Part shown: positions 4,418-64,000 of the stretch, in pieces
How the letters are laid out: every line of letters begins with the position of its first letter
Numbering within the stretch: the first letter of the stretch is position 1
NCBI GenBank assembly: GCA_965649825.1
Contig: OZ287701.1
Location: 733,101-797,100 of the forward strand
DNA length: 64,000 bases
Source of the DNA: Penicillus capitatus
Lineage: Eukaryota > Plantae > Chlorophyta
Reading direction: 5' to 3'
The notes under the pieces: generated by a model
Seen by the model: only the letters and a program-made list of their open reading frames with translations
The model's database searches: none
What the model was told of the DNA's origin: nothing
Translations under genes and position numbers: made by a program

Positions 4418-5988
4418 ATGCATCGAAGACTGGTGCTTGAAGCGATCCGCCTTGTACCGACCGTTCGTGTCGTGCACTGCCCCAATATCTCGATCCTTTC
4501 GACACCGACTGCCTCCTCGGTGCTCGATCGATGGCAGACGTTCGCTGCGGATCTCACCTGGCGGCCCTACTCGACTCGAGTGACTCCCGACGAATTTATC
4601 CCCCTTCGTCCTCCACCCAACTTCGGAATCCGGTTCCTCCCGCGTGCGGTTCCGCCATCGAGATCGAAGAGAGCCAGCGATCTAGGGTTGTCCCGGAGAA
4701 GAAGGCTTTTGTCGTGGAGCGTTTCGGGAAATACTTGAGAGTCTTGGACTCGGGTTTGCATTTCTTGATCCCTCTGGTGCCGTCTCTTCACATGTCTCTT
4801 GTCTCTCTCATAGCCTTTCCATCTAGGTGGACCGAATCGCCTATGTTCACAGTCTGAAAGAGACGGCTATTCCGATCAATCACCAGAATGCCATTACCAA
4901 AGACAACGTGTCTATTGTTATCGATGGCGTCCTCTATGTCAAAGTCAGGCGACTCCTGATGGATGAGGGGCAACGCAAATGCGTCTGTAGATTGTGGATC
5001 CTCGAGCGGCGTCGTATGGAGTGGAGAATCCTCTCTATGCCATCACACAATTGGCCCAGACGACGATGCGGAGTCAGTTGGGGAAGATGTCGCTCGATCG
5101 AACGTTCGAAGAGAGAGATGCACTCAACGCCGCCATTGTCAAGTACTGGACCTCCGTCTGTAAAGATGTACATCGGATGATGGTGTTTAGAGATATCAAT
5201 GCAGCCGCACAGGCGTGGGGTCTTCAATGTCTGCGATATGAGATTCGAGATATCGAACCGCCAGAGATGGTTGCACGGGCAATGGAACTTCAAGTTGGAT
5301 GGAGTTTGTGAGTGGGAGAGAAAGGAATGCGTGTGTCTGATTGTCCGCAGGCAGAGGCCGAGCGCAAAAAGAGGGCACAGGTTTTGGAATCGGAAGGATC
5401 GAGAGATTCTCTGATCAACGTTGCCGAGGCGAAGAAACAAAATGTGATCTTGGCATCGGAAGGTGCCAAACAGGATCAAATTAACAGAGCCATCGGTAAA
5501 AATGTCACTCTTCTCACTCTTTAGAGATGGGATAGGCATGCAGGTGAAGCCGAGGCAATTTTGGCCAAAGCGAAGGCGACGGCGAAAGGACTCGAGCAGA
5601 TCTCGGAACAGATCCGATTGAATGGAGGGATGGATGCCGCCGCTCTCAGAGTGGCCGAACAGTACATGGAGGTGCCATCTTATCATCGTTTACAATAGAG
5701 TGAGCAAAAGTGTGATGACAGGCTTTTGCAAATATTGCCAAACAGAGCACGACAATGCTGTTGCCAGCCAACACGGGCGATCCAGCATCAATGGTGGCCC
5801 AGGCCATCGCCATTTTTCGACAGGCATCCAATACTTCCATTCCAATGCGACAAGACCCGCCATCAGCAACGCCAAAAACGGAAGGATCAGAGGAGAGAAT
5901 CGAGAGCGAGGAGAGTCTTCAAGAACAGGAAAAGACAGAGACTGTGCAGCAAACGGACACTAGATTTTCATTACAGAAAAAGAAATAG
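4418..5988 (+). CDS. SLP2: Stomatin-like protein 2 (SPFH/band-7 family, probably mitochondrial), multi-exon
   Basis: Spliced motifs [91 protein letters not shown]; GT-AG introns of 53, 50 and 47 nt checked at 4633-4685, 4777-4826, 4944-4990. Confidence 0.93.
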
Positions 5989-6060
5989 TTGACATGGACA
6001 GGCAGACAGACAGCTTTCGATGTCAGCGCCGACCGTTCGAACTGATGAGCCTAAGCCAAA

Positions 6061-7122
6061 TCAGGCTTCGTGCTTCGTTTGCGAATTTTCGAACAGCGGT
6101 GGCGTTTTTGCAAACAAGTCGTCATCGTCGATGTCGATCGATCCCTGCGTTTCGCCTCTAGTCCTTTGAACTAACGTGCTGTTTGTGCAATGAAAGATAG
6201 ACGTAGCGACATGATCGTTTTCTGTCAGCGCGTCGAGTGCAACGAGGGTGTCGACGATGCAGAGGAGTCTCGGACGTCGCGCCAACATAGCAGTCGATGC
6301 TTTTCATCCAGTATATTTATAGGTGCTGGGCTTGTTGGCACTTTCAGAATTTCTGACATCGATCAGGGGCGTCGTCATCGCGAGAGTACTCAAAAAAGGT
6401 GTCTGATTCATCGCGATATCGGTGTTGGTATCAAAACGGCGTCAGACGCCATACATAAGAGAAACGTCATATCGGACAACAACTGTTGGACGGTTGAAAT
6501 GTCGTAAAAATACCGTGCGTGTAACGTCGAGGTCCACCGACGGTCCGAAACGAAACCCTAAGATCATCAAACGGAGCAAATGCTGATGAGAAAACTGAGG
6601 TGGCACACGGTCCTGTCTTTACAGTTCATGTCATCACTCCAAAAAAGTGCGACAGTAGATAGCATGAGAGAGCGCATGCCATATCTGCTAGAAGCACTCT
6701 AGAGACGGACAGAGAGCTGACAAGACGTCCTATGACTCTCTGTCTCGGGTACATGGCTGTGACTGCCAATAACTGCTGCTTCGAATTCAGGTGGGAAACG
6801 GCTCAAATCGACGAGGCGATCGGAAGGATCAGGTATGGAAAAGAACAAGAACTTCTGAGTGAAGTACTAGGCCTCTGCACTTCTGTCTAGCGATGGAGGG
6901 TATCGCGTGTGACATCACTCCAATGTCCAACTCGATGCACACATACACTGATCGAGTCCCCAGCGAAGCATTCCTACTGTGAATGCCGAGAAAAGAGATG
7001 ATCGTTCTGCGTTCGTTAGTTACGTCACGAGACGTGTCGTGGAGCATCTGCCTATAGGATTGCCGCTCATATGGATCCGAAACTGGAATACACAGATCCT
7101 CAATGAGAATACACGCATTCAT
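6061..7122 (-). CDS. Hypothetical multi-exon protein
   Basis: ATG at 7122 about 110 bp after the RdRP-gene stop; exon-like segments (MNACILIEDLCIPVSDPYERQ..., GFVSDRRWTSTLHARYFYDISTVQQLL, terminal ORF 6061-6288); full splice path not resolved. Confidence 0.35.
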
Positions 7123-7233
7123 GGGCCTTCTTAATGGAAGTCAAATCGCCCATGTCATGTCATAGATACAATAGAACCAACGAGTGCATGTCTGGTCTGT
7201 GGAATACTGGACCCCTCTTAGAGATGCGTTGCG

Positions 7234-10200
7234 CTACTGTGTTAGGCATTTGAGATTGTCTGAAAACAGAAATGCCTCTTTCCATAGAGCTTCCATTGCG
7301 TTCTCCACATTAGCACTGTCCAGGAATGGCTCGACGGCAGGAACAATGCGGACTTCAGTGATGTCACGTGGTTTGGCATATTGACCTTGCGCCAGACGGC
7401 ACGTATACTGTTCGGCCTTTCGAACGACCAGAGTATAGGGAACGCCAAATCCCATTTTGCGCTTTGTGTATTTGAATATAGTATACTCTTCCATATAATC
7501 GACGTCTAACTGACTGCTCTTTACATAGAGCTTCTTCTTATCGTCTCTGCCGATGGCATCGACAAAATCCGCTGCCAGTGCATGATCCTCGAGTTCTGTG
7601 ATCTCGCTCATCTGCCATTCAGAGAATCAAAAGAGTTCTGCCAGTACAGTGCAATGGTACCTACCTGCGTTTTGAGCATGAATCGGATGTCCGTTTCGCG
7701 TCCCTCCACTTCATCTTTATGACAGATACATTGCCGTTTGACATCGCTGACGATCCAGCGAAGCGGTGCCGTTTCGACACCGATAAAATTCAGCTTGGCA
7801 TCGTACCGTGCCGTCACGACACCCGTCCCTGTCTGCGCTACTACCTTGACGCCAATTTGATCTGCCTGTCGCGGCTTTGCATCGCCATCTGGTGAAGCCT
7901 CCTTCATTTTCTGTGCCAAAAAGGCGCGTTCTTTACCATCGAAGAAGACAGAAGAGACAAAGGAAGTCGAAATGAATCCTTCACCGCCGTGTTCTCTTCT
8001 AGGTGCACGTCGATGGTATGCTGAATCGAACATCGGATCCACAGATCGTGTTTTTCTGCGTTCCAGAGCCTTTAGCAATTCTTCCGTCGTCAAATGCGTG
8101 GCATCTTCGACGAAAGACTGAGGAGGACTGATGACATAGCTTCGGCCAAACTTGACCTGAATCTCGCATGGACCAGTGATGTCCACTGAATAGTGTCTTT
8201 GGAAGTGAGCCAGTTGACGTCTGAAGTGCTGCCTGAATTGATCATAGCATTCTGTATTGATATGATCCACAGGTGAAGCGGCAGGAAGGTCATGCAGACG
8301 AATCACAAAGAGCTTCTTATAGTCATGCTGCGGATACCTATAGCCTAAGTAAGGCTCCAGGCGAATCGAGGCTTGGTTTCCGGCGGCGGCTTCAATCATG
8401 AGATTGTGAGCACCTGTCACATCTTTTGCGCCCCTGGATACAGCAAACACCGACATCGAACCATGGATCCACCTTTGCCTTACCGAGTGCGCAGTGTCCG
8501 TCCAGTTTTCTGGCGTTCGGCTGCTCGCATGTGAAGACTCTCAATCTGTTTTGCCAACAGATAGAGTTCTGCCTCTGTTCCTGTTCCTTTGACGATCTTT
8601 CCTGGTTGCGAAGCTCTTTCTTGAGATTGAATGTCAACGAATGCTCTAGATCTCCGATGCAGCGTTCTGGCGAGTTCGTCCTCGTTTCCGATCACTTCAC
8701 ACGCTGCCTCGCGCTTGATAAAGAAAACTTTCTCGATGGTGATTTTTGTGAGTAAGACTGAGGCACTGATATGGAGCGACAGGTGCAAAGAGGCTTTGTC
8801 CATTTCGGCTATGAGCAGATCTAGCATTTCCTTTCGTGCTCCATCATTCCATCTTTCCATCTCCAGTGCCTGAAACAGGAAAACGCCATAGGAATGGAGC
8901 AAATGTCGTGATCGTGATGTGACAGACCGTTGCGAGTTCTGGATGGAGGCTCGATTGGATCAGATGCTTGCCTTGCTTCATGAAGGTGCACAGAAGACGA
9001 CCCACTCGACCAGATTTTCCTCCTTCCCAGCGTTCCTCACTGACGTCATCGTTTGGATCAGCCATCAGATTCTGATACAAGCTGTTCCATTCGCTTTGAG
9101 CACCAAAGCAATCGTTATAGAGCGGATTATCATAGAACTTCTCGACCGCCTCAGAGAACTGTCTCGCTGGGATTGGTCTTATTTTTTCCTCCTTCAGACA
9201 ATGATCGATGAACATTAGCGGCACCAGGTAATCTGGCAGGAAAAAGACGCGACCGCCCACCAATCCTGTCGTGTATATCCAAGTGCACAAGACTCGGAAG
9301 ACGGGGAAGAGCCATTGGTTCTTGAAGAAGTACTTCTTGATCACAATCCATTTAACAACTTCAGCCGGATCAGCAGAGAGTCGAGCCCATGTCCTGGGAA
9401 GCTTTCGGTTTAATCGGACTCTGAGATGACACTGTTTGTCATTCAAGCTCTGTTTTGCAAATAGAGAAGAGCATTCGGATTGCACTCTTTCCAACCGCAT
9501 CAATTGTTCTTCCTTGCTCAGGGATGTATTCCTTGAAAAATGCACCTGACCTCTCTTCTTCATTGCCACCAGAACACGCACTTCTCCTCTTGGCTCATCA
9601 AACAGCAGGAGTTGACTGGCACCGAAGAGCACACACGCGGCGACGCGATCACAGGCATCTCCCAGGACACGTGCCAGAGTCGTGTGATCTTTGTAAGTCT
9701 CGTACAATGTCCTACACAGCAGAGTCTTGCCGTCAGGGGAGGAAGGTTAAGGGCGCACTCAATCGTTCCGTCAAAGATTTCTTTGACACTGGCCGAGATC
9801 TCGGAGTAAATCGAGTGCGGAGATTTCGCCACAGAAGCTGCATTGCTGTAGATCTCGGCCAAAAGGTCATTCAGCATCCATGGAAAGCTCAAGAAATAGA
9901 GCATCTCTTTACCTGATACCATACATCTAACACATTTCGAGAAAGGATGTGTGTCTTACCCACAGAATACTGATCGCCATAATGAGGAGAGTAGGCAGCA
10001 TAGTACCAAGCAGACGCTTTCTTTCTCTCTTCTTCTCTGCCGTGATCCACATCCAGTTGTCGGTCGTTGTGAAAGATCGCCTTGTATTTCTTCACGATCT
10101 CCTTCAGCATGAACTTTACGTTCTTCTTGACGTCATCCATTTCGCTTTCGAGCCTGGGATGAACTGAGGCGATGGCTCCAGACCACACCTCTGCCTCTGT

Positions 10201-13200
10201 CTCAATTCCGTACATTCGCATGACGGACAGGATTTCTTGATTGTATTGTTTGAAGAGAATGCAAGCATCGTCTATGTAGTTTTCATATCCCTCGACCCTG
10301 AATGCCTTGTCTGGATGTGGCCGAGTGCTTCGCTCACTTGCTGCAGGATTGACGGTGTCTGTCGCATACTTGTTGCATTCCCTGAACATCGTCCCCAGAA
10401 CACGTATGGACGGATAACTTGGCTTGTCCGTTTTCATCATAAAATCCGGATACTGCTTGAGTTCAGATCTGATATCTGCCGGCAGATGTACCCAGTCTCC
10501 AGACTTAGGCGCATCCACTGCCTGTGCATGAATCTTGGCCAGTTGCAAACAGATATCGCTCTCCAATCCTTGCTGATCTGCCAGTGCCTTGTGTGTATTG
10601 TCAATCGTACCCAATGTGTCATTGGCAATGAACTCGCATATGTAGTCCGCCATTTGACTGAGTCGGACCTCCTCCTCGTTGTTCTTCTTGGCTCTCTCTT
10701 CGTATTCCATGGGCGCTTTGATCGGAATGCTGGGCAACAGGCGTGGATCCCAGATACAGTGATACTGATCTCCATCCAAATCAGAACCGGAGAGTTCGTT
10801 GGGATGCGGTCGCGGTCCCTTCTGGGGAAAGACGACACAGTCGACGAGATGGCGCAGCTGCGGGACATCCCTTCCTTTAAAAGTACGAACGTCCCCTGGA
10901 TGAATGCATGGATTCTTCATGATGACGATCTTGGAGGTAATCACACGGGTGTCTACCCCTGGGCGATGCAGCTGCTTCGATATCTGGATAAAAACCTGAC
11001 CGTACTCTAGCACACCTTCCTCGTCCATCACTCCAATCAACACGCGTCCCTTATCGTCATCAAGGCGGACTCTGGAACGTTCTCTCAGGTCTTTCATTTG
11101 CAGCCTTTGGCAGACGAGGCAACATCAGTCATAAGAGAAGGGATCGTGCAAGAGAGTGTACCGATAGCTTGCGATCATGATGCTGCGGAAGAACGCATCG
11201 GAAGTGAACTGGAATCGCACTCTTTGCAGATGATTGATGTCTTTGGATACAGTTCCCTGAAGAGCTTTGACTGCGGCTTCCTCCTCCACAAACATCTCAT
11301 TCATCTCTGCGATCTTATTCTTCAACAGAGCCTCAAAAACATCGTCTCTCACTCCCACATTGTTCAGCAACATGATAATCTGTATGGCGAAGACGAAGCT
11401 GTCGAGAAGGTGCAATGAAGAGGAATAACAGACCTGTTGGTTGAGATGCAAAGGGAGGGGACGTGTATACTCAAGCACTTCGATGTTTTTGCTCTCGGAT
11501 GGATACTTTGACATGCTGTCCCGTATTACTGGCTCATCGAGTTGATATCTATGTTTCCTGAAGAATTCATCTGGCCAGACAGACACCACGCCCTTGCATC
11601 CTCCGATTCTGATCTGAAATGCAGAAGGGATTGTTGACTGGTCCAGTGCATGCCGCTCCTTCACCTAATATATGAGACGTCACGTGCAGAAGACATGGTG
11701 AAGAGTCGCTTGCTTTCTTAGCCAAAGAGACCGAGATGAACCCAACACCATCGGAGAAACAATAACAACCCGATTCCACATCTGTCTCTTGGTAACACCG
11801 GCTCACAGAGATCGTCCGTGTCGATGTTGAAAATGCCAGTCCCAGTCTTGACATATAACGCGGCACATGTCGAATACCTAAAGATCACACACGACTTTGA
11901 AACGGCGCCCGAAGCCGTAACGCACCAGAAAGGTCTCCAATTGCATTCCGAATTCTCTCTGCAATCTTGTTGTCGTCGTCTTCTCGGATGAAGTAGCAAG
12001 AATGTGCACGTATCTGACTGTTCGATGCGGCCAAGTAGACATATCGATCCGGACCGATTTCTATTCCGTTTATCAAGATATCATGCACTCGATTCGTGAT
12101 GAGGGACAGATCTCCATGAAGACTTGTCAAATTCTCACAGTTTTCATCGCGAATGGCCACGCGAATGAAGATATCGGGAGTGTGCTGCCGCACAATGCGA
12201 TTCGTCTAAGGCACCATTCCATGCCTCACCAACACGAGCGTAAGAGATCGTACTTGGACTAGATCTGGTTCATAGAAGCGAAGTGACGTCGGTGTGATGA
12301 TGACTCGCTTCATGTAAGCATGATTCCAGCTCGGCGGGCTGAACTCTGGAGTAAAGTTTGCTGACTCCCGCTCTCGTATCATGAACCGGACGGGGTCGCA
12401 GAAGAGCTGTTTGGACGTCACCTTTGTCAGCTCGTATATCGCTCTGACGGCTTCATGAGCTTCCATAGAGTTGAGAATCTGATGGAATCGATTGTTGATG
12501 CGTTCGGCAACGAATCCAGGCGTGCTCATGAGACAACGCATTGCGTAGTTCACTTCGGGATCCTGTCTGTGGACACAAGAGCGTGTGAAATTCAGCCATG
12601 CTTCGTCTTCACGAAACGGCCTTGTGTTGCATACTGTCTCCACAGATGTAAAGTGCACGGTCACTCCTGACGATTCCAGCAGCTTCAACACTTCGCGCAC
12701 TCGATGGTCAATGAGATTATGCTGAGTAGATGATCGTGGGTTCGGTATCTCCAGCTTGTAGGTGAGGCAGTTGGAAAAGATATGACGGCTTTCTGAATGA
12801 ATGTATTCATTGACGCGTCGTGCACTTTCCCTGACGTCGCCATCAGACAGCGAGATTTCGCTCAGACGTGGAGTCTGTGCAAAAGTGAGATAGAGAATGA
12901 GAATGGCATCCTCTGTGTTGTCACTCTCTTGAAAATCCACCAAGGCAAATTCCCTCAGGTCTGCGAAGGATGCCTCTATCTGCAACTTATCGTTTACGAT
13001 GATGACAATCCTGTTAGATCCACGTTCTAACCGTAGACTGCTTGCATTTCCCAATCGCATCTGCTGCGTATACAGCCGTTGCCATTTGAGTGACCCCAGG
13101 GATGTCTGATGTAAGCTCAGTCTCAGTGTTGTTGCTCTGGGGAAGTAACTGGGCCGATTCAATACCGTTGTCCAGATGTCGAACTCATCGGACTGAAAGA

Positions 13201-16200
13201 TGTCGGAAGTAAAGAGCTCCAGAATTTTCTTTTCAAAGCAACGTGTGTTTTCTTCATCCGTGTTCTCCTTCAACGTCAGCATGGCTTCTGAAAAATAGTT
13301 CGTGCTGATGGAGTTCTCAATCTTCACTATTTTGTCGATCCACTCGGTGATCTGGAGGACATCGTCATGCGTTCCGCGAATGATATTTTTGATGAAGGCA
13401 ATAGCTTTCTTGTATATCTCATCGTCCGAAACGAAGATGGCAAAACGCACAGCGATCTTCCACTTCTCCGACTCCTCCTCGTCGAGGAACGGTAGCTCTT
13501 CTGGATAGGCGCCAGCGACATTGATTTGATTCATGATGTCCTGCATTTCGTTCAGCTCTGTTTCTGAATATCTGTTCTCTTCTGTCTCTAGCTCTTCGTG
13601 TTGAAATGTCTTCCTGCCTGAAGCTTCTTCCAAGGCCAACACCTTTTTGCTGTGCGCTTCGGTTGGATCAAAACAATAGCCCGGCTGCATCATCTTCTGG
13701 ATGACGCTTGCTTGGGTCTGCATAAAGTTCAAGTAAAACTGTTGCCGACTCTTCTCCTTTTCATTTCTGCATATAATATAGAATTTGCCGTTTGATGCTC
13801 GACAAGCGCGTCCTCGGCTCTGGATAAACTGTCGAAGATTATCGGGCGCCTTCATGCGGATCACCATGTTGCAGGATGGCACATCCAAACCTTCTTCGAG
13901 AATAGTCGTTGTGACCAGCAATCTAATCTGACCACGTCGAAAATCATTCAGGATCTCCTGTTGCTCTTTAAGCAGCAGACCATCGCCACAGATACCTCTA
14001 CCAACAATGACTTGAGGATTGAGTGCCGTCCGAATACCCGATATCTGCGACAGACATCTGCAGAGTTTTTGTGCCGTTCTTCGCATGTCGACAAACACCA
14101 GAATTCGTGAGTCCCTCCCGTTCTCTTCTTTATGCTTCTCAATCATCCCAATCATCCTCTTGCACTTCTCTGAGAGGAGATGGCGTTGGAAGACATCATC
14201 GTTCTTGGTCTTTGAGCGGACGTGCTGAAAAAGAGTCGCGTAGAGAGGCCGACGCGTTTTGAAATCCTTATCGAATCTGCAGACACAGAGCGGGTCCGTA
14301 TTCGATGCTGTCAGAGGGAGGGGCGTCTAAACGGACCCGTGTAGCACTTCTTTCTTCCATTGCTCCTGTCCCGGTGAAGGATCGTCAATGCCGCTGAAGA
14401 CTTTCTTCAACTGCTGCATAGCGATCTCATGGCCAATAATGTTGTTGATTTCATGGACTGCCAAGAGCTGATTCATATGATCTCTCACGGCTTGGCTGCA
14501 GAAAGAGAGATACGTCTACGTTACTGTCTACTGGCAGAGACATACCCATAGCAGATGGCTTCTTTCTGATTGCGGAATTCGGTTTTGTTAAGAGCCTCGT
14601 TCAGTTCATCTTCTATCTTTCTGAGCTTTCCACGGAGTTTGTTGGTGTCGACCTCCTGATTGTCTCCTCCGGTCAATAGACTCTCCAGTTGACTGAACTG
14701 TGGGGCAATTCTTGACAGGCGATGATGTGTCGCTCGAGTGACTTCACGCATGTAGTTATCGACTTGTTGTTTAAACTCGAATTCAGGTTGTTCCTGGCTG
14801 GGATCCACCAGAAAGACAATATCACTTGTGCGATGTATTCCGTTGTCATACGGATCATTCTGACGAGGATAGCAAGGATGGCAGTGTAGCTTCTCGGCTA
14901 TACGACTGATGTCTCTCTTGACCGTTGACCCCGTAGAATCACTCTTCGGATTGTCCAATGGAGATGCCGTCATTCCCATGATCAGAGGTCTGGTGGATGG
15001 ATCTACACTTGTAGCGATTGTTCGAGTAAACAGCTTTGCGTAGGGACTGCTTCCTTTGGCCTCGTGGGCTTCGTCCAAAACCAAGCAGCAGAGATCCTCT
15101 ATCCTTACTGTATTGATCTCGATCAGCGCATTGAGACATGCACATGTGCAGACCAGGATATCATATTGGTATTCACCAATGACCTGCAAAGATGGTATTG
15201 GCATACAGTGAAACAAACAGTCAGCAATAGCATCGCACTTTGAGGTGCTCTCTCCTCTGGTCTGGATCCATCTGACCAGACAGGGTGACGACTTTGGAAG
15301 CGGAGAGTTCAGACTGAATGGCGAAGGACTGCTGCTCGACAAGGTGATTGGTGTTGACCACAAAGACAGCCACTTTGTGGGGATTGATGTGCAGCATCGC
15401 TCTCAAGACACCGGCTGCCACGAGAGTCTTGCCCGATCCTGTTGGCAGACAGAGCAAGCTGTTTTGTCTCAGGCAGAAATTCAGCATCTCCATCTACGTC
15501 ACATCGTCTCACACAAATGAGATCTGTCACATCACAGACTTGATAATTCCGCATCTTCGTAGCGGTGAGTTGCTCCAGGGTATCTTCGGATGTTTGATCG
15601 ACATCAACACGGACCGTGGGATATGTGCGTTTTCCCTCACGACTCCAAAACTTCCGTCCCGTCTAGACGTCACATCTCGAAAATCAGAATGATCATCCAG
15701 ATGACTTGACGGACCCTTCGCATGATGTCTTTTTGTGTGATGGGTGGCACACCACACGTTTCCAAATCCGTCAGCAGTCGTTTCCACTTGTTCTCGCTTT
15801 TCCTTTCGCCATTTGGAAACATCAAGGCAACATGTTTCGGACGGATTTCGTCGTAGGCCGTTTCGGTGACGGCATCCGAGTGACATACGCCGACCTTCTT
15901 CTCGCAGTTCCTAACGATGCGGCTTGAGCGTGTACCGTCTGTCGTTTTTTGCATTTGTGTACCTGCAGTTGATCGTCCAACCGACCTCATCGTTTCCCGA
16001 TTCATATTTTTCGCGTCGAAACGTCGCGTTGCTCTTCTTGAGTGCGACCTGTGCGCGCAACATCTGATGCATCCTTTCGAAGAAATGTCTTGAAGCTGGC
16101 AGCACCTCAGGACGGACGATAAGTTTGTTTTCGTTCTTCAAGATCGCCAGCTGTGTGAACGTATACAGCTCTGCCGAACAGTAGCGGCACTCGACTTTGC

Positions 16201-16210
16201 AAAGCGACAT
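7234..16210 (-). CDS. Giant multidomain RNA-silencing protein: RLR-CTD-like Zn domain + DExD/H (Dicer/RLR-type) helicase + RNA-dependent RNA polymerase + TUTase-like NTase + KH-like + C-terminal domain
   Basis: Helicase Q-motif MRNYQ, Walker A LPTGSGKT, DEAH, TAS, ILVFVDMRRTA, TTILEEGLDVPSC, QSRGRA; RdRP motifs SRLGLAFS, FSDGVG, SAFQIRIGGCKG, KNPCIHPGD, catalytic SGSDLDGD (10768-10782), LSFPW. Junctions traced in frame with GT-AG sites plus one GC-AG. Confidence 0.85.
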
Positions 16211-16322
16211 GGTAAATGACATACACGGCAGCGACGGAGATACATCTGCTTTTAAGGTTCCTCGGAATCCGTGTCCATCACGGAGATGTACGACATCGAT
16301 GACAAACAAGAAACGTATCGCA

Positions 16323-16874
16323 ATGGATGCTAGAGACCCTTTCTATCGTGATATTTTCGACGACGATTGATTCCATGACGTCATCGAGCGAAAGATGGGG
16401 CTGCAAGCGACTCAGTCAGGAGGAACACGATGAGGAAGTGCACTCGATATGTTATTGAATAATATGACGTGGCAAGAACTGTACACGGTGTTGGGTTCAG
16501 GAAAAGATTGCGTCTACGTACAGTTGTCAAACGTCACATCATGTGATGCCGCATCTCACTCTTGGGTCACACTTTGCCGGATCTCGCACCATCGTCAAAA
16601 CACCGACAGAACTTCTGTTGATGCGTCTGCATCAGGTGTGCAACGTCAAAGTGTTGTCAAAATCGACATAATGCAATGCGCCGTATCCTCACTCTTTTGG
16701 AAAAGTGACCTGAGACGAGAGGCGCCAGACAATGGCCCTTTTTTCAGATACAATGTCCATGAGGCGATCAACCTAAGGGAGGAGGGGATCCTATTCACTA
16801 GGGAAGGATTTTACAAAAACAGATCCATTGTCTTCTCCATGTCTTCACAGAATTCGGTACAGCGGAGTGAGTGA
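16323..16874 (+). CDS. Possible small hypothetical gene divergent from the RdRP gene
   Basis: Exon-like segments and ORF 16449-16874; no motif recognised and splice path unresolved. Confidence 0.25.
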
Positions 16875-16892
16875 GAGAGAGAGACGTTCGCA

Positions 16893-17264
16893 TTAGATGG
16901 CTCCCGTCAGACGCGAGAGAATCGCCAGTGCTGCAATGAACAATCCGATATAGAGAAACCAGTTTGCCCCCATCGCCACATTCTCTGTTCCGCCCAGTCC
17001 AACATACTCATCCCGCATCCGATTCCGCATCTCTTTTGACAAAGGCGTTCTCGTTGGCTGCTTCAGATCGTCAATATAGACCGCTTTCTTCTCTTCGGCT
17101 TTAGTCTCCTCCACCGTCGGAGGCGTCTCATCGACGGGCTGCTGCTCGGCCCTTAGGCAACGCGGATTGCGTCGCCGGGGGAGAGACGAGAATCGAAAAG
17201 GGCGTGTGGTTCGACAGGCATCGAACGGGGTAACTGGAATCGAAGTCGAGATCGTCGATAACAT
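16893..17264 (-). CDS. Small plastid-targeted protein with a C-terminal transmembrane helix
   Basis: Intronless 123-aa ORF: Ser/Thr/Arg-rich transit-peptide-like N-terminus, acidic linker, then EYVGLGGTENVAMGANWFLYIGLFIAALAILSRLTGAI. Confidence 0.7.
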   Translation of the reverse strand: MLSTISTSIPVTPFDACRTTRPFRFSSLPRRRNPRCLRAEQQPVDETPPTVEETKAEEKKAVYIDDLKQPTRTPLSKEMRNRMRDEYVGLGGTENVAMGANWFLYIGLFIAALAILSRLTGAI

Positions 17265-17342
17265 CCTTCGAACAATGAATACATGTATGTCTCTTTCATT
17301 GAGACCAATCGTCGTTTGCCCTACATGGTGGCACTTGGAGGA

Positions 17343-18717
17343 ATGCCGATGCCCCTAACCTCAAGGGGTATCCACTCAGTAGCGTCATGCTTTACTCGAC
17401 GCCCATCAGCGCCACAAGGCGGTGGTCTTCGACTGCCCAGGCGTTCAACCGACAGAACCCTTGTTCGCAAGGCGACACATCTCATAGCACGCGCCAAAGC
17501 AAGAACCTGTGAGATGCACGAGGCAGTTGTGTAGAGAGTCTTCAACAGAGAGATGGCGTCGATGGGACAAGATTGCCGACAAAAAGAAATTCCAAGCAGA
17601 GCCGTTTCGCATCTCGCTTTCCTTCTTTTGTCGTATGTCCCTGACCCCCATTTCGGATCTCGACTCCTCGCTAAGGTGGTCGAAGATGCGGCGTGGATAA
17701 GTGGTTGTGTGGCCATGCTCAACCTGATCATCTGCAACGCCGCGATAGCAAGGATGAGATTAGTGGATCTGTCAGATACCGGTCTCTTAGCCAGTGCGTC
17801 CGTCTCACTCTTTTGCGAGAGTGAGGAATGGAATGGAATACAGTTTAGGCTTTCCACTGTCTCCAGCTCTTCAAGGGATTATCACGACATTTCTACTCAT
17901 TCTGTTCTCGGAAGTCGGAGACAAGACGTTCTTCGTGGCATTTATCCTCGCGCTGCAGAATTCCAAAGCAGCTGTCTTTGCAGGCAAGATCTCACACGGC
18001 ATCCATTGCCCAGAGAGCTACAGTTGTGGACTAGGGACATTTGGCGCACTGGGCTTCATGACATTGATTTGTGTGGGATTGGGTCAAGCACTGAACCAAA
18101 TTGTGTATGCATTGCCAGAGAGCGTGGTAGACTTTCCGTTGAGCGATGTCTTAGCCATTGCATTACTGACCTGGTTTGGTCTGCTCGGACTCAAGGTGTG
18201 TATCCACCCATCTATCGTCTCCCTTGACGCTCTCCTCTCGCAACTCTTATGATACATAGAGTGCCAGAAAGGCCGAATCGAAGATCGCTGCGGAACAGGC
18301 AGAAGCAGAAGAAGGCGTCAAGGGTCTGACATTCGGTAAGAAACGATACAGTTCAGCAGTCATCAATACTAAAAGCGGACATTAGGTTCGGGTGGACTGA
18401 TCCTGTCAACTTTTCTTCTGGTGTTCTTTGCCGAATGGGGTGATAAGTCCTTCCTGTCAACCACCGCCCTCTCCGCGGCCTCTTCCCCACTTGGCGTCAC
18501 CATCGGTGCCTCTCACCTTCCATGATCACCGATCGGATGCGCCTTTGATACAGGGGCCCTTTCTGGACACTTTGTCGCCACGTCTTTAGCCGTATTCAGC
18601 GGGTCTATCCTTTCCAACTACGTGTCTGAGAAATCCGTCGAGTACTGTAGCGCATTTCTCTTTCTGTCATTTGCTGCAGTCAAGGCGTATGATTTGGTCG
18701 AGAGAGTCGTTTTCTAA
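17343..18717 (+). CDS. GDT1: UPF0016/GDT1/TMEM165 family Mn/Ca transporter, plastid PAM71/CMT1-like; start uncertain
   Basis: Two signature motifs E-x-G-D-K-[TS] ([20 protein letters not shown]), hydrophobic helices, transit-peptide-like N-terminus; TAA at 18715-18717. Confidence 0.88.
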
Positions 18718-33233: not shown

Positions 33234-33564
33234 ATGAGCGTCTTCCATGACGAAGTGGAAGTCGAAGATATGGAATGGGACGAAGAACTGCAAGCTTTCA
33301 CTTACCAATGCCCCTGCGGCGACCTCTTTCGTATCACACTTGTGCGATGGTCGCTAATATCACGAGCTCAGGAGATGACACAACTTGTAGGCAGAACTGG
33401 TATCGGGTGAAGAAATGGCACACTGTCCGAGCTGTACACTCTACATTCGTGTGATCTACGATCCAGTCACTGCATCTCCGCTCCTACTCCATAGATAGAG
33501 CGTCTTGACGTAGGAGGATTTTCATGAGATGGAACCCGAGACGCCGATTGTTGAGGTTAAGTAA
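33234..33564 (+). CDS. DPH3: DPH3/KTI11 CSL zinc-finger protein (3 exons)
   Basis: Spliced [61 protein letters not shown]. Confidence 0.95.
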
Positions 33565-34938
33565 GAGACGTCACATCATAGGAAGATGGAAGCCAGTTTG
33601 CAAAAAGGGAAGGGCTGGACTGCAGCATCGCCCATTGTGACTTGTATTCAAAGGACGTAGTAACGTCTCTCAGACATCGATAACGGATGGATAACTGTTC
33701 TCTGGAGAGACGCGACTGAAATGTGTGAGGAATGGACGTGTGAGGCTTCTTTGGGAATTTTGGACTGCCGAGACGTATTCCCGAATTACCCAATGTCACT
33801 TCGTGTACACCTCCACACACGAATCTCTCACTCTTCTCTCCTTCGGTCACACTCTCCGTCAATACACGCGTCCAATTTATGCATGTGTTGGAGCGCTCTT
33901 TGCGCATTGCATCTGAACGGAGAAACAGATCGGCGGGCGGCGGATCGGCGACGTCGATTCGTAGAGGTCTCCATCTAGAAGGCCACAAATGAACCACCGA
34001 AAGTGTGACGACGATCGGGGACTCGAAAGGAGACTGCACTCGATTGGCAAGATGTGCACCCCGTGTCACGAATGCACGTTGCATAGAGGAGCGAAGCTTC
34101 TGAGCACATTGGAGGTGCGGTGTACAGACAATAATGGATGAGAAGTAGAGTGGGTGCGAAAGGAGCGAAAGCATCTGCCTTCCTTGAAATCCAAGAAACG
34201 ACCAACGCAAAATCTTATCACTGCATGACATCGAAGTCGTTGCCTCTCCCTTCCCTAAACACAAGTGTCGATTCGACATCTACCCTGTTGATCATGGCCG
34301 ATCCGATTCGCACCCGGCTTTCGACGTAGAACACCGAGCTGTGGTTGACCGGATTCGACATCGTTTGCTTCGGGAATATTGCCCGTCTCACACTAGAGAA
34401 GAGTGAGAATCGCTAGTACATCGCGGAATGGAGATACATGAATGGGTTTGGCACCGGTGCGCAAAGCGGACTCCGTGTCTTCCGGCATGACGATGGCAGC
34501 ATCGCCACAGGGAGGCTCCGTAACAACCAGATGAAAGGACACGTCGTTTTTTAGCTCAATGATTCCGTGTCTATTGCGACAGAGAAGCAGAGAGTCTTCT
34601 TTGACGTTGCCATCAGATGGGCCATTGTCATCAAGGCTCAGGTACTCGATTTCGCGAAGAACGCAATCGACGGCTGCTCGCTTGGCCAGGACTTCGGCAT
34701 GAGCGTCGTTGATGCGCTGAGGCGATGCCCAGCGACATGGCAGGCACTTTGTCCCTGTCGCCAGCGATGTCACACGTACGTCTTTGCCAGATATCGCGAC
34801 GACCGCTGCAAGGGTGGTGTATTCATGGGCCTGCGGTTTTCCTTTCTTCGGAAGTTTTCGAAACAGCTCGAAAACGTGATTGACGATCGTCGTTGTTGTC
34901 ACGACGTCGTCATTCAATTTTCGTCGTTTCGATTCCAT
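33557..34938 (-). CDS. ADAT1: tRNA-specific adenosine deaminase 1 (Tad1/ADAT1)
   Basis: LATGTKC, DAHAEVLAKRA, PPCGDA, LRRKPGKGEATTSMSCSDKILRW; no dsRBD seen. Confidence 0.9.
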
Positions 34939-34995
34939 CCGAACCATAAACCCAAACATGCACGACGATATCGATGCGATTCTATCGGTCGCGCA

Positions 34996-35225
34996 CGCGA
35001 TTTTCGCACAGTTGATCGATGGGATTCCGATTGTGATTGATAGGCAGTTGATCCATACGATCGCGATTGATGCGAACAAAGTTGATTGCCTTCGCGATTT
35101 TCGCACAGTTGATCGATACGATCGCGATTGTGATTGATAGGCAGTTGATCGATACGATCACGATTGATGCGAACGAGTTTTATTGCCTTCGCGATTTTCG
35201 CACGGTTGATCGATTCGATCGCGAT
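34996..35225. repeat. 97-bp tandem repeat (~2.4 copies) with internal subrepeats, GATC/CGAT-rich
   Basis: cgcgattttcgcac(a/g)gttgatcgat recurs at 34996, 35093, 35190; subunit cagttgatcgatacgatcgcgattg occurs about twice per unit. Confidence 0.88.
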
Positions 35226-50817: not shown

Positions 50818-50926
50818 TGAACGTGCCTTGGCAAGTTGTTTGATGTCTGTGTACAAATTTGTTATGTACTGGAGAGAGCTGTGTAGAGTACAAAACAACG
50901 CATATTGTCATCAAGTGTTCATGGAA

Positions 50927-51000
50927 TGCTCCTTCGGGGGATTGAACCCCGGACTTCCGGCTCATAAGACCGGCGCTCTAACCGACTGAGCTAAAGGGGC
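50927..51000 (-). tRNA. trnI-UAU: tRNA-Ile (anticodon UAU), intronless
   Basis: Cloverleaf GCCCCTT TA GCTC AGTCGGTTA GAGC G CCGGT CTTATGA GCCGG AAGTC CGGGG TTCAATC CCCCG AAGGAGC A; A and B boxes intact. Confidence 0.93.
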
Positions 51001-51833
51001 ACACCAGCAGAAACGTCTTACACGTCAACCTGACCTCATGGGCACTGTGAGAGATGGATGGCAATGTGTTGGCAATATGTTTTGCCCGTTTCATCACAGA
51101 GAAGGCTGATCGACGTTATTCCGGCGGCTGAAGAACGCGAAGTCGTTGAATGGTTTGACAGGACCTCCTTGGTTCTCATATAGTGCCTCTTTAGTGTTGT
51201 GCATCTATGTACGAGGCCATGGCCTGCCAACAGTCCAATCCATTTTTGCCTCAGGTGTGTGGAGAAGAACGATGAAGATGGCTATGTCGTGCAGGAGATC
51301 GTAAAAAATACGAAAGCGGCACGTCCGCGACGATAGAGCATGCATTGGTGTGATGACGATTCAACAGCTGAATACGTCTTTCTAGGGAGTCGAAGACTTG
51401 GCGGAAAAAGAGTATCCCGTTGTGCTTTTATGTTTCGATTGTCCTGAATCTGCGTCTTCCCCGACGGCCGAAACGCAGTGAACGAACAATGTTGCCCTGT
51501 AGATGAAGAGAGACAGATAGATCCTTTGACGTTGCATCGAAATCGTGCGTATTCGCTTCCGGCTGATTGTTGATTCGTTCGAAAGTATCAGAATTGCAGG
51601 CCGTCAACGTTGTCAAAATGCGCCAAGGTCGCGGTCGAGAGAGGCCCCTGCTCCAGGATATCCCTGCCAGAAATGAAACCGAGATCTCAATGATCCGTTC
51701 TCGGTCCCCACAGTAACACGCGATTTGTCAGATCAGAAAGCACGGATAGTAACACCCATGCATAAGCTCGACTCACGCCTTCATAGAACAGAATCTCGTC
51801 ACGATGTCCTCGTCTTCGCATTCTTCCACGATA

Positions 51834-55869: not shown

Positions 55870-64000
<8,131 letters not shown>

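Follow-up and report, generated by a model that had tools for sequence, protein, structure and literature searches.

A helicase–RNA-dependent RNA polymerase fusion from the green alga Penicillus capitatus carries a C-terminal, probably inactive nucleotidyltransferase-fold domain

Results

One gene encodes a helicase, an RNA-dependent RNA polymerase and a long C-terminal extension

The stretch of DNA analyzed here (the window) comprises 64,000 nucleotides of the green alga Penicillus capitatus (contig OZ287701.1, positions 733,101–797,100). A chain of minus-strand reading frames running from approximately 16.2 kb down to 7.2 kb makes up the pieces of one gene, in which a Dicer/RIG-I-type superfamily 2 (SF2) helicase is fused to an RdRP (RNA-dependent RNA polymerase) and to an extension that begins with a nucleotidyltransferase (NTase)-like domain, the main subject of this study (Table 1). 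The raw gene pieces matched Helicase_C and RdRP (PF05183) in Pfam. No match was obtained for the 287-amino-acid open reading frame (ORF) that holds the two peptides in which a preliminary description of this DNA had recognized a degenerate NTase. Manual splicing gave a single open frame of 2,721 amino acids from 17 exons, separated by 16 GT..AG introns of 46–60 nt. In Pfam searches, the spliced product contained DEAD (amino acids 191–356), Helicase_C (amino acids 589–704), and one continuous RdRP match spanning positions 1–582 of the 582-position model. The least certain part of the gene model is the 5' end, with the ATG at 16222.

The model of the 3' half was compared with P0001, an uninterrupted 1,355-amino-acid ORF on a 4.6-kb contig that is collinear with the RdRP and 99% of the extension at 40% identity. 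Because this ORF runs unbroken through both regions, the RdRP and the extension are one protein. Upstream of the exon that encodes most of the NTase-like domain, the reading frames could also be joined by a 27-nt intron (9715–9689). This junction was rejected in favor of a 47-nt intron (9758–9712), which is similar in size to the other introns and fits the alignments with P0001 and with a second relative, P0074. The full domain order is Dicer/RIG-I-type helicase, RdRP, RdRP head, NTase-like domain, KH domain, and a triphosphate-tunnel-like barrel, with 793 amino acids (1929–2721) located behind the head.

Among PDB sequences, the best match to the helicase was an ancestral reconstructed Dicer helicase (E = 1.4e-39), and the further best matches were LGP2, Dicer, Dicer-2, MDA5, RIG-I, and Dicer-related helicase. 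The helicase and the RdRP are both apparently active, as judged from their intact motifs. For the head, PF26253 (RdRP_head) was recorded for the identical ORF at an ortholog locus (L003, 96–98% identical). The region of approximately 500 amino acids between Helicase_C and the RdRP (amino acids 705–1203; 12254–13795, minus strand) produced no significant domain match, with only sub-threshold matches in Pfam. At the N terminus, approximately 150 amino acids precede the helicase (15963–16222 and 15715–15910, minus strand) and contain CxxxCxxC at amino acids 8–15 and CxxC..C at amino acids 85–95. These cysteine motifs suggest a zinc-binding module, and the region had no match in Pfam or among PDB sequences.

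Table 1. Positions of the gene, its domains and its motifs in the window
Feature	Position	Strand	Basis and remarks
Whole gene	7234..16222	minus	Spliced frame; Pfam on the product; P0001, an uninterrupted ORF, supports the exon junctions of the 3' half
Dicer/RIG-I-like SF2 helicase	13796..15548	minus	DEAD and Helicase_C in Pfam; PTGSGKT, DEAH, and QSRGRACR intact
RdRP domain PF05183, amino acids 1204–1760	10375..12298	minus	Pfam E = 1.4e-154, full-length model match
Catalytic DLDGD of the RdRP, amino acids 1625–1629, intact	10782-10768	minus	Motif search
RdRP head	9812..10374	minus	Ends in LSFPWML (9892-9872); contains intron 9959-9913
TENT/Cid1-type NTase-fold domain, amino acids ~1933–2253	8744..9811	minus	Pol-beta-like palm and helical central domain; AF2, Foldseek, hhalign
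LFGAS, degenerate hG[GS] turn (G1980-A-S)	9615..9629	minus	Aligns with FGSS of P0022, P0040, P0057, and P0062; follows model strand 46–50 (beta1)
GEVRV, E1993 and R1995 at the DxD aspartate positions (beta2)	9573..9587	minus	Aligned to SDLDL, SDIDL, and SDVDL; start of model strand 66–74
WARLSAD, R2060 at the third catalytic Asp (beta5)	9369..9389	minus	Aligned to LSCDISAD, LCVDLCAN, and RIDITAD; model strand 130–134
Central-domain helix-loop-helix WLFPVFRVLCTWIYTTGLVGGRVFFLPDYLVPLMFIDHCL	9195..9314	minus	Model helices 156–170 and 184–195; most conserved block of the domain
KH domain, type I, amino acids ~2254–2331, beta-alpha-alpha-beta-beta-alpha	8510..8743	minus	Family profile, Foldseek, AF2 secondary structure (model residues 33–109)
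TTM-like beta-barrel, amino acids ~2348–2721	7237..8411	minus	AF2 and Foldseek; contains intron 7664-7612
Motif-a-like CEIQVKFG (ExQxK, for ExExK)	8168-8133	minus	P0005 has canonical ELEIKFG
Candidate motif c ITEVRIV (ExR, for ExE)	7362-7333	minus	Inferred from strand order; ExE in P0056, P0051, and P0068
Conserved LRWIVSDVKR and ETDIRF	7763-7665	minus	Located in the barrel domain

Profile and structure searches place the domain behind the RdRP head in the TENT fold

Direct searches with the extension were uninformative. Neither the raw ORF nor the spliced 793 amino acids had a Pfam match, phmmer found nothing among PDB sequences, and a three-sequence profile of the extension searched against the PDB gave two chance-level matches only. 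Word-indexed protein searches returned few relatives (2 and 11), and the link to NTases came from an exhaustive profile search alone. In 1.84 billion representative proteins, this search recovered 67 relatives of the extension, many of which are C-terminal parts of RdRPs. The extension profile reached P0022 at E = 8.5e-26 and also P0028, P0040, and P0057; all four pass the Pfam gathering threshold for PF22600 (MTPAP-like palm), and P0040 additionally passes that for PF01909. In the family alignment, PF22600 was matched by 6 of the 24 domain sequences. The canonical relatives carry textbook motifs of terminal nucleotidyltransferases (TENTs), for example FGSS..SDIDL..CVDLCAN. When the clade containing the window protein was compared with the Pfam-validated NTase clade, hhalign reported a probability of 99.5% (E = 1.5e-22 over 201 columns) and placed GEVRV on SDLDL and WARLSAD on LSCDISAD.

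An AlphaFold2 (AF2) model of residues 1929–2263 was predicted with very high confidence (mean predicted local distance difference test [pLDDT] score 90.2, predicted template modeling [pTM] score 0.91). The elements follow the expected order of helix, beta1, turn, beta2, helix, and beta3–5, and then a helical lobe. Foldseek returned 63 matches in the PDB at E<=0.001, and the best 50 of the 63 were all non-canonical poly(A)/poly(U) polymerases, namely GLD-2, TbTUT4, Cid1, MEAT1, mtPAP, URT1, TUT1, and TUT7. The failure to match Pfam or PDB sequences directly, whether with the protein or with the three-sequence profile, is what a chance motif match in a different fold would produce. That explanation is refuted by transitive profile E values down to 1e-26, by the 99.5% hhalign probability, and by the uniform TENT list among the best 50 of the 63 structural matches, and we assign it practically no weight. 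On both profile and model evidence, the domain is a genuine member of the TENT fold (Cid1, GLD-2, Trf4) by descent.

The preliminary description had called the NTase fold from two peptides, and the call was upheld through the profile route (hhalign) and the structure route (AF2 and Foldseek). Both peptides are encoded by the minus strand in a single exon (exon 14, 9711–8928), where they share one reading frame and have the spacing that had been given. The same description placed the domain directly after the RdRP at 8950–9710. The two do belong to the same chain, but approximately 170 residues of RdRP head separate the Pfam RdRP domain from the NTase-like domain, which is also wider than had been thought (~9811–8744) and contains the introns 9758–9712 and 8927–8870.

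Sub-threshold matches to the Pfam family DUF7752 (PF24934) were obtained in three of the canonical relatives, in the helix region of the central domain (e.g., P0022, 433–481, and P0057, 233–285). DUF7752 may represent the corresponding domain of a related group of NTases.

The catalytic positions of the NTase-like domain are replaced

The turn that follows beta1 reads F-G-A-S in the window protein. The Gly is retained, Ala replaces [GS], and Ser lies one position further on; the relatives have FGSS, FGAS, FGPS, TGMT, or HGPA. Eleven residues separate G-A from E-V-R, which occupies the place of the D-h-D motif, as the preliminary description had proposed and the alignment bore out. The third catalytic Asp is replaced as well, by Arg. 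The three metal-binding carboxylates of the TENT family ([DE]h[DE] on beta2 and [DE] on beta5) are thus absent as a set, with E1993, R1995, and R2060 in the D/D/D positions. The D/N located four residues past the third catalytic position is retained as D2064. HLRVRL had been considered for the third catalytic strand and was replaced by WARLSAD upon alignment with the canonical relatives.

The most conserved part of the domain is a helix-loop-helix in the helical central domain. The second peptide of the preliminary description, recognized there by its central-helix pattern, is part of WLFPVFRVLCTWIYTTGLVGGRVFFLPDYLVPLMFIDHCL (9314–9195), which covers the AF2 helices of the poly(A) polymerase-type central domain. 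The three deepest members of the clade are only 37–43% identical overall, yet they have 25 of the 40 residues of this block in common. The first helix lacks the basic residues of the canonical relatives: it reads LCTWIYTTGL, compared with LVRWAKVAGL in the Pythium relative (P0056) and LLRWGRDSGL in P0022. We tentatively equate these basic residues with K193 and K197 of Cid1, which bind the triphosphate of the NTP.

Within the clade, the residues at the triad positions vary. They are E-V-R/R in the window protein, E-V-C/R in P0003 and P0074, E-V-N/E in P0001, D-V-S/I in P0002, and D-V-S/D in P0006 and P0007. Such variation is what would be expected after selection for catalysis has ceased. Several separate branches retain intact triads (P0022, P0057, and P0062; P0040; P0028; P0049), and the Pythium relative P0056 has D-L-D...E. 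Because intact triads are found on several branches, an active NTase is probably the ancestral state.

A domain of this kind could in principle still be an atypical tailing enzyme that uses E1993 together with D1988, E1989, and D2064, or that relies on one-metal chemistry. The position of E1993 holds E or D in almost the whole clade, D1988 and D2064 do not vary among its three deepest members, and two of the three carboxylates persist in P0006 and P0007. The window protein, however, has two arginines at metal-ligand positions, an altered G[GS] turn, and none of the basic residues found at the central-helix positions of canonical relatives. The loss of the triad itself is also difficult to reconcile with activity; in Pol-beta-type NTases, mutating any single triad residue is generally known to abolish activity. 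We consider residual tailing activity improbable.

The NTase exon is maintained by purifying selection

Two syntenic copies of the gene were found in ENA metagenome assemblies (ERZ25074695 and ERZ26696514) and were compared with window positions 4800–18300: L004 (1–17056) and L003 (1–6864). Their presence indicates that at least two related species carry the gene, whose nearest copies lie in ENA and Logan metagenome assemblies. L004 keeps both neighbors, a GDT1-like gene upstream and a Band_7/stomatin gene downstream, and L003 shows Band_7. In the NTase exon, the L003 and L004 copies are approximately 98% and 77% identical to the window, respectively. Relative to L004, the ratio of nonsynonymous to synonymous substitution rates (dN/dS) was 0.32 for the NTase exon and 0.07 for the RdRP exon. 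The more distant P0001 and P0002 share 37–43% of their residues with the protein, and the central domain contains long runs without any change.

A decaying remnant, drifting toward loss and without a function of its own, would also have lost its catalytic residues, with replacements that differ among clade members, and would evolve faster than its surroundings, as the NTase exon does at roughly 4.5 times the dN/dS of the RdRP exon. However, a dN/dS of 0.32 is well below 1, and neither frameshifts nor stops interrupt the frame. The identity to P0001 and P0002, the invariance of 25 of 40 central-block residues, and the very high AF2 confidence also speak against decay, and the domain is present in every full-length relative recovered. 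A remnant is therefore very improbable, even more so than an active enzyme. Because purifying selection acts on an exon whose catalytic residues have been lost, a pseudo-enzyme is the most likely reading. The preliminary description had named this reading as one of two alternatives, and the E/R/R triad, the altered turn, and the dN/dS of 0.32 are consistent with it.

A KH domain and a triphosphate-tunnel-like barrel follow the NTase-like domain

The remainder of the extension was modeled separately with AF2 (amino acids 2224–2721; pLDDT 83.6, pTM 0.84). The family profile matched IMP1 KH3-4 (E = 4e-8) and hnRNP K KH3 (E = 4e-4) among PDB sequences, and Foldseek aligned the same region with KH domains of PCBP2 and hnRNP K at a target template modeling (TM) score of approximately 0.7. 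In single-sequence searches, no member of the family passed the threshold for Pfam KH_1 alone. The GXXG loop is degenerate: it reads G-N-E-D (8695–8675, minus strand), and the family consensus is G-s-E-x, as opposed to G-K-G-G in IMP1.

The C-terminal barrel resembles the triphosphate tunnel metalloenzymes (TTMs; Cet1/Pct1, CYTH), which have an antiparallel beta-barrel tunnel fold. Its best Foldseek matches were the trypanosome proteins RESC2 and RESC1 (8cdp and 8fn6; E = 5e-12 to 1e-8), with RESC2 (8cdp_B) at E = 5.3e-12 and a target TM-score of 0.60, and RESC1 at 4.6e-10. The RNA triphosphatases Pct1 (6.8e-6), T. cruzi Cet1 (1.9e-4), and Cet1 (1.8e-3) followed. None of the 29 members of the KH and barrel module matched any Pfam family at E<=0.01, and no sequence similarity between the barrel and RESC1 or RESC2 was detected when the family profile was searched against PDB sequences. 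The TTM metal-ligand motifs (ExExK in motif a, ExE in motif c) are incomplete in the window protein, the motif c strand being a candidate assigned from its place in the fold. In Cet1p, the ligands in these motifs are E305, E307, and E496 (PMC10201420). RESC1 and RESC2 are Cet1-like tunnels that lack two of the three metal-binding glutamates and bind the guide-RNA 5'-triphosphate without hydrolysis, and they are reported to lack sequence homologs outside kinetoplastids (PMC10201420).

Relatives of the C-terminal module

The C-terminal module was found in bryopsidalean green algae (Ostreobium, Caulerpa, Bryopsis), the scallop Argopecten, and the oomycete Pythium insidiosum, in which GLD92068.1 (P0056) carries the same module. 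For the helicase–RdRP fusions of oomycetes, Dictyostelium, Hydra, and Nematostella, the helicase and the RdRP are the only domains given in a published Pfam-based survey (PMC4791657). In the literature searched, we found no description of an RdRP–NTase or RdRP–triphosphatase fusion, or of NTase, KH, or tunnel domains in RdRPs; an earlier description is possible.

Parts of the module also seem to occur as stand-alone proteins. Branchiostoma XP_078591657.1 (P0063) is a 403-amino-acid stand-alone tunnel-like protein. P0040 and P0028 are proteins of approximately 390 amino acids that have an intact NTase triad and, behind it, the beginning of the KH region; they are either separate genes or exon-level ORF calls.

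Other genes in the window

Three further features were identified, all on the minus strand. Two adjacent ORFs at 33557–35106 contain the halves of the adenosine-deaminase (editase) domain A_deamin (PF02137) and represent an ADAT1/ADAR-like gene split by an intron, a further RNA-modifying gene of the window. A very large HUWE1/UPL1-like ubiquitin ligase gene with UBA, UBM, and HECT domains occupies 56453–63984, where a single stretch of 1,854 codons is open; its best long matches are land-plant UPL1 proteins (37–40% identity), and an amoebozoan match is confined to the HECT domain. A tRNA-Ile with anticodon UAU (50926–51001) is the sole Rfam or ARAGORN match in the 64 kb.

Discussion

A possible binding role for the NTase-like domain

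The combination of a TENT fold, a lost catalytic triad, and purifying selection makes it highly likely that selection maintains the domain as an inactive member of the TENT fold. What it is retained for is a separate matter, and we regard binding of RNA 3' ends as a tentative proposal that falls somewhat short of an even chance. The proposal can be put as follows. The domain would no longer add nucleotides, and the cleft between palm and central domain, with its conserved helix-loop-helix, would be kept as a binding site. The likeliest ligand would be the 3' end of the template RNA, presented to the RdRP in the way that Cid12 or Rdn1 may do in trans. The adjacent KH domain could hold single-stranded RNA, and the TTM-like tunnel, by analogy with RESC2, might hold rather than hydrolyze a 5'-triphosphate end, such as that of a de novo initiated RdRP product.

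The main competing explanation is that the module is purely architectural and does not bind RNA ends; it could pack on the RdRP head or on the helicase, it could contact a partner protein, or it could dimerize as the RESC1 and RESC2 barrels do. All the catalytic residues and the basic residues of the canonical relatives are gone, and the most conserved surface (GLVGGR..FLPDY..FIDHCL) would serve equally well as a protein-protein interface. The dead NTase copy of TUT4 and TUT7, a platform for Lin28, is a precedent. Against this, the conserved block is part of the central domain that forms the cleft and does not sit on an outer face, D2064 is retained, and the neighboring domains are all nucleic-acid handlers. 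We consider a purely architectural role unlikely, although it is the closest competitor to RNA 3'-end binding.

Several observations count against an inactive TENT-fold domain that binds RNA. One carboxylate, E1993, is still present, and two of the three are found in sister sequences, which would make weak or unusual catalysis possible. The NTase exon is clearly more relaxed than the RdRP exon at a dN/dS of 0.32. The Foldseek TM-scores (approximately 0.5–0.57, with root-mean-square deviations of 6–9 Å) are moderate and do not amount to a tight superposition, as expected of a two-lobed enzyme with variable lobe opening. The alignment used by AF2 took in canonical NTases and may bias the model toward their fold, but the significance of the homology does not depend on the model. 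The conserved cleft could bind another part of the same protein instead of RNA, and the degenerate GXXG loop weakens the RNA-binding reading of the KH domain.

A broader idea follows the same lines. The NTase, KH, and TTM-like domains might form an ancient RNA-end cassette of eukaryotic RdRPs that couples handling of the template 3' end to capture of the product 5'-triphosphate. In the lineage of the window protein, both enzymatic domains would have turned into end-binding pseudo-enzymes, and RESC1 and RESC2 would descend from the RdRP tunnel domain. We offer this as speculation that is more likely to be wrong than the architectural alternative, yet better placed than residual tailing activity.

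Implications

In fission yeast, Tetrahymena, and nematodes, the helicase and the tailing enzyme that RdRP complexes require are subunits of their own. The natural joining of RdRP, helicase, and NTase in one protein is "Rosetta-stone" evidence, obtained independently, for an old and widespread partnership, and a single polypeptide makes it possible to study how template-end recognition, tailing, and RNA synthesis are coupled. The coexistence of dead and intact NTase domains among the relatives is a natural experiment on whether catalysis or binding matters in such complexes. The KH domain and the RESC1/2-like tunnel point to an unrecognized step, in which the RdRP itself would handle 5'-triphosphate ends, and the guide-RNA binding proteins of trypanosomes may have originated from such a tunnel domain.

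Comparison with known systems

At the level of the single domain, the closest counterparts are GLD-2, Cid1, and TbTUT4, which share the two-lobed arrangement of a Pol-beta palm and a helical central domain, the same strand order, and the same motif positions. Identity to these enzymes is only 9–16%, and the window domain differs in having E/R/R for D/D/D, a G-A-S turn, and a location within a protein of 2,721 amino acids. The N-terminal NTase copy of human TUT4 and TUT7 is likewise a dead TENT-fold domain kept in an RNA-processing enzyme, where the inactive copy serves Lin28 as a binding platform. That copy sits next to an active NTase copy, and its partner is Lin28/pre-let-7, with no RdRP involved.

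For the barrel, the best structural match is the trypanosome pair RESC1–RESC2 (GAP2/GAP1), which also has a tunnel with missing metal ligands. RESC1 and RESC2 are stand-alone mitochondrial proteins that heterodimerize, whereas the barrel described here forms the C terminus of an RdRP, and binding of a 5'-triphosphate is suggested for it by analogy.

The N-terminal half of the protein is comparable with the RDR-gamma enzymes, namely Dictyostelium RrpA–C and the RdRPs of peronosporalean oomycetes, Hydra, and Nematostella, in which DEAD and Helicase_C domains are likewise fused to the N terminus of an RdRP. The published architecture of these fusions does not mention the NTase-KH-TTM-like extension. 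The Pythium copy that has the extension keeps D-L-D...E, unlike the copy in the window.

Taken as a whole, the protein resembles a single-chain RNA-directed RNA polymerase complex (RDRC), a one-chain equivalent, by analogy, of the RdRP complexes of fission yeast, Tetrahymena, and nematodes. Because the same chain also bears a Dicer/RIG-I-type helicase, the preliminary description was apt in comparing it with Cid12 and the Rdn subunits. In the S. pombe RDRC (Rdp1 with the Hrr1 helicase and Cid12) and the Tetrahymena RDRCs (Rdr1 with the uridylyltransferases Rdn1 or Rdn2), a PF05183 RdRP, an SF2 helicase, and a TENT NTase are likewise associated with one another. Cid12 and Rdn1 are active enzymes, and in the nematode counterpart the RdRP works with DRH-3, with the NTase MUT-2 acting upstream. 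Compared with the S. pombe and Tetrahymena complexes, the window protein is one polypeptide, its helicase is of the Dicer/RIG-I type, its NTase triad has been lost, and its KH and TTM-like domains are without counterpart in those complexes.

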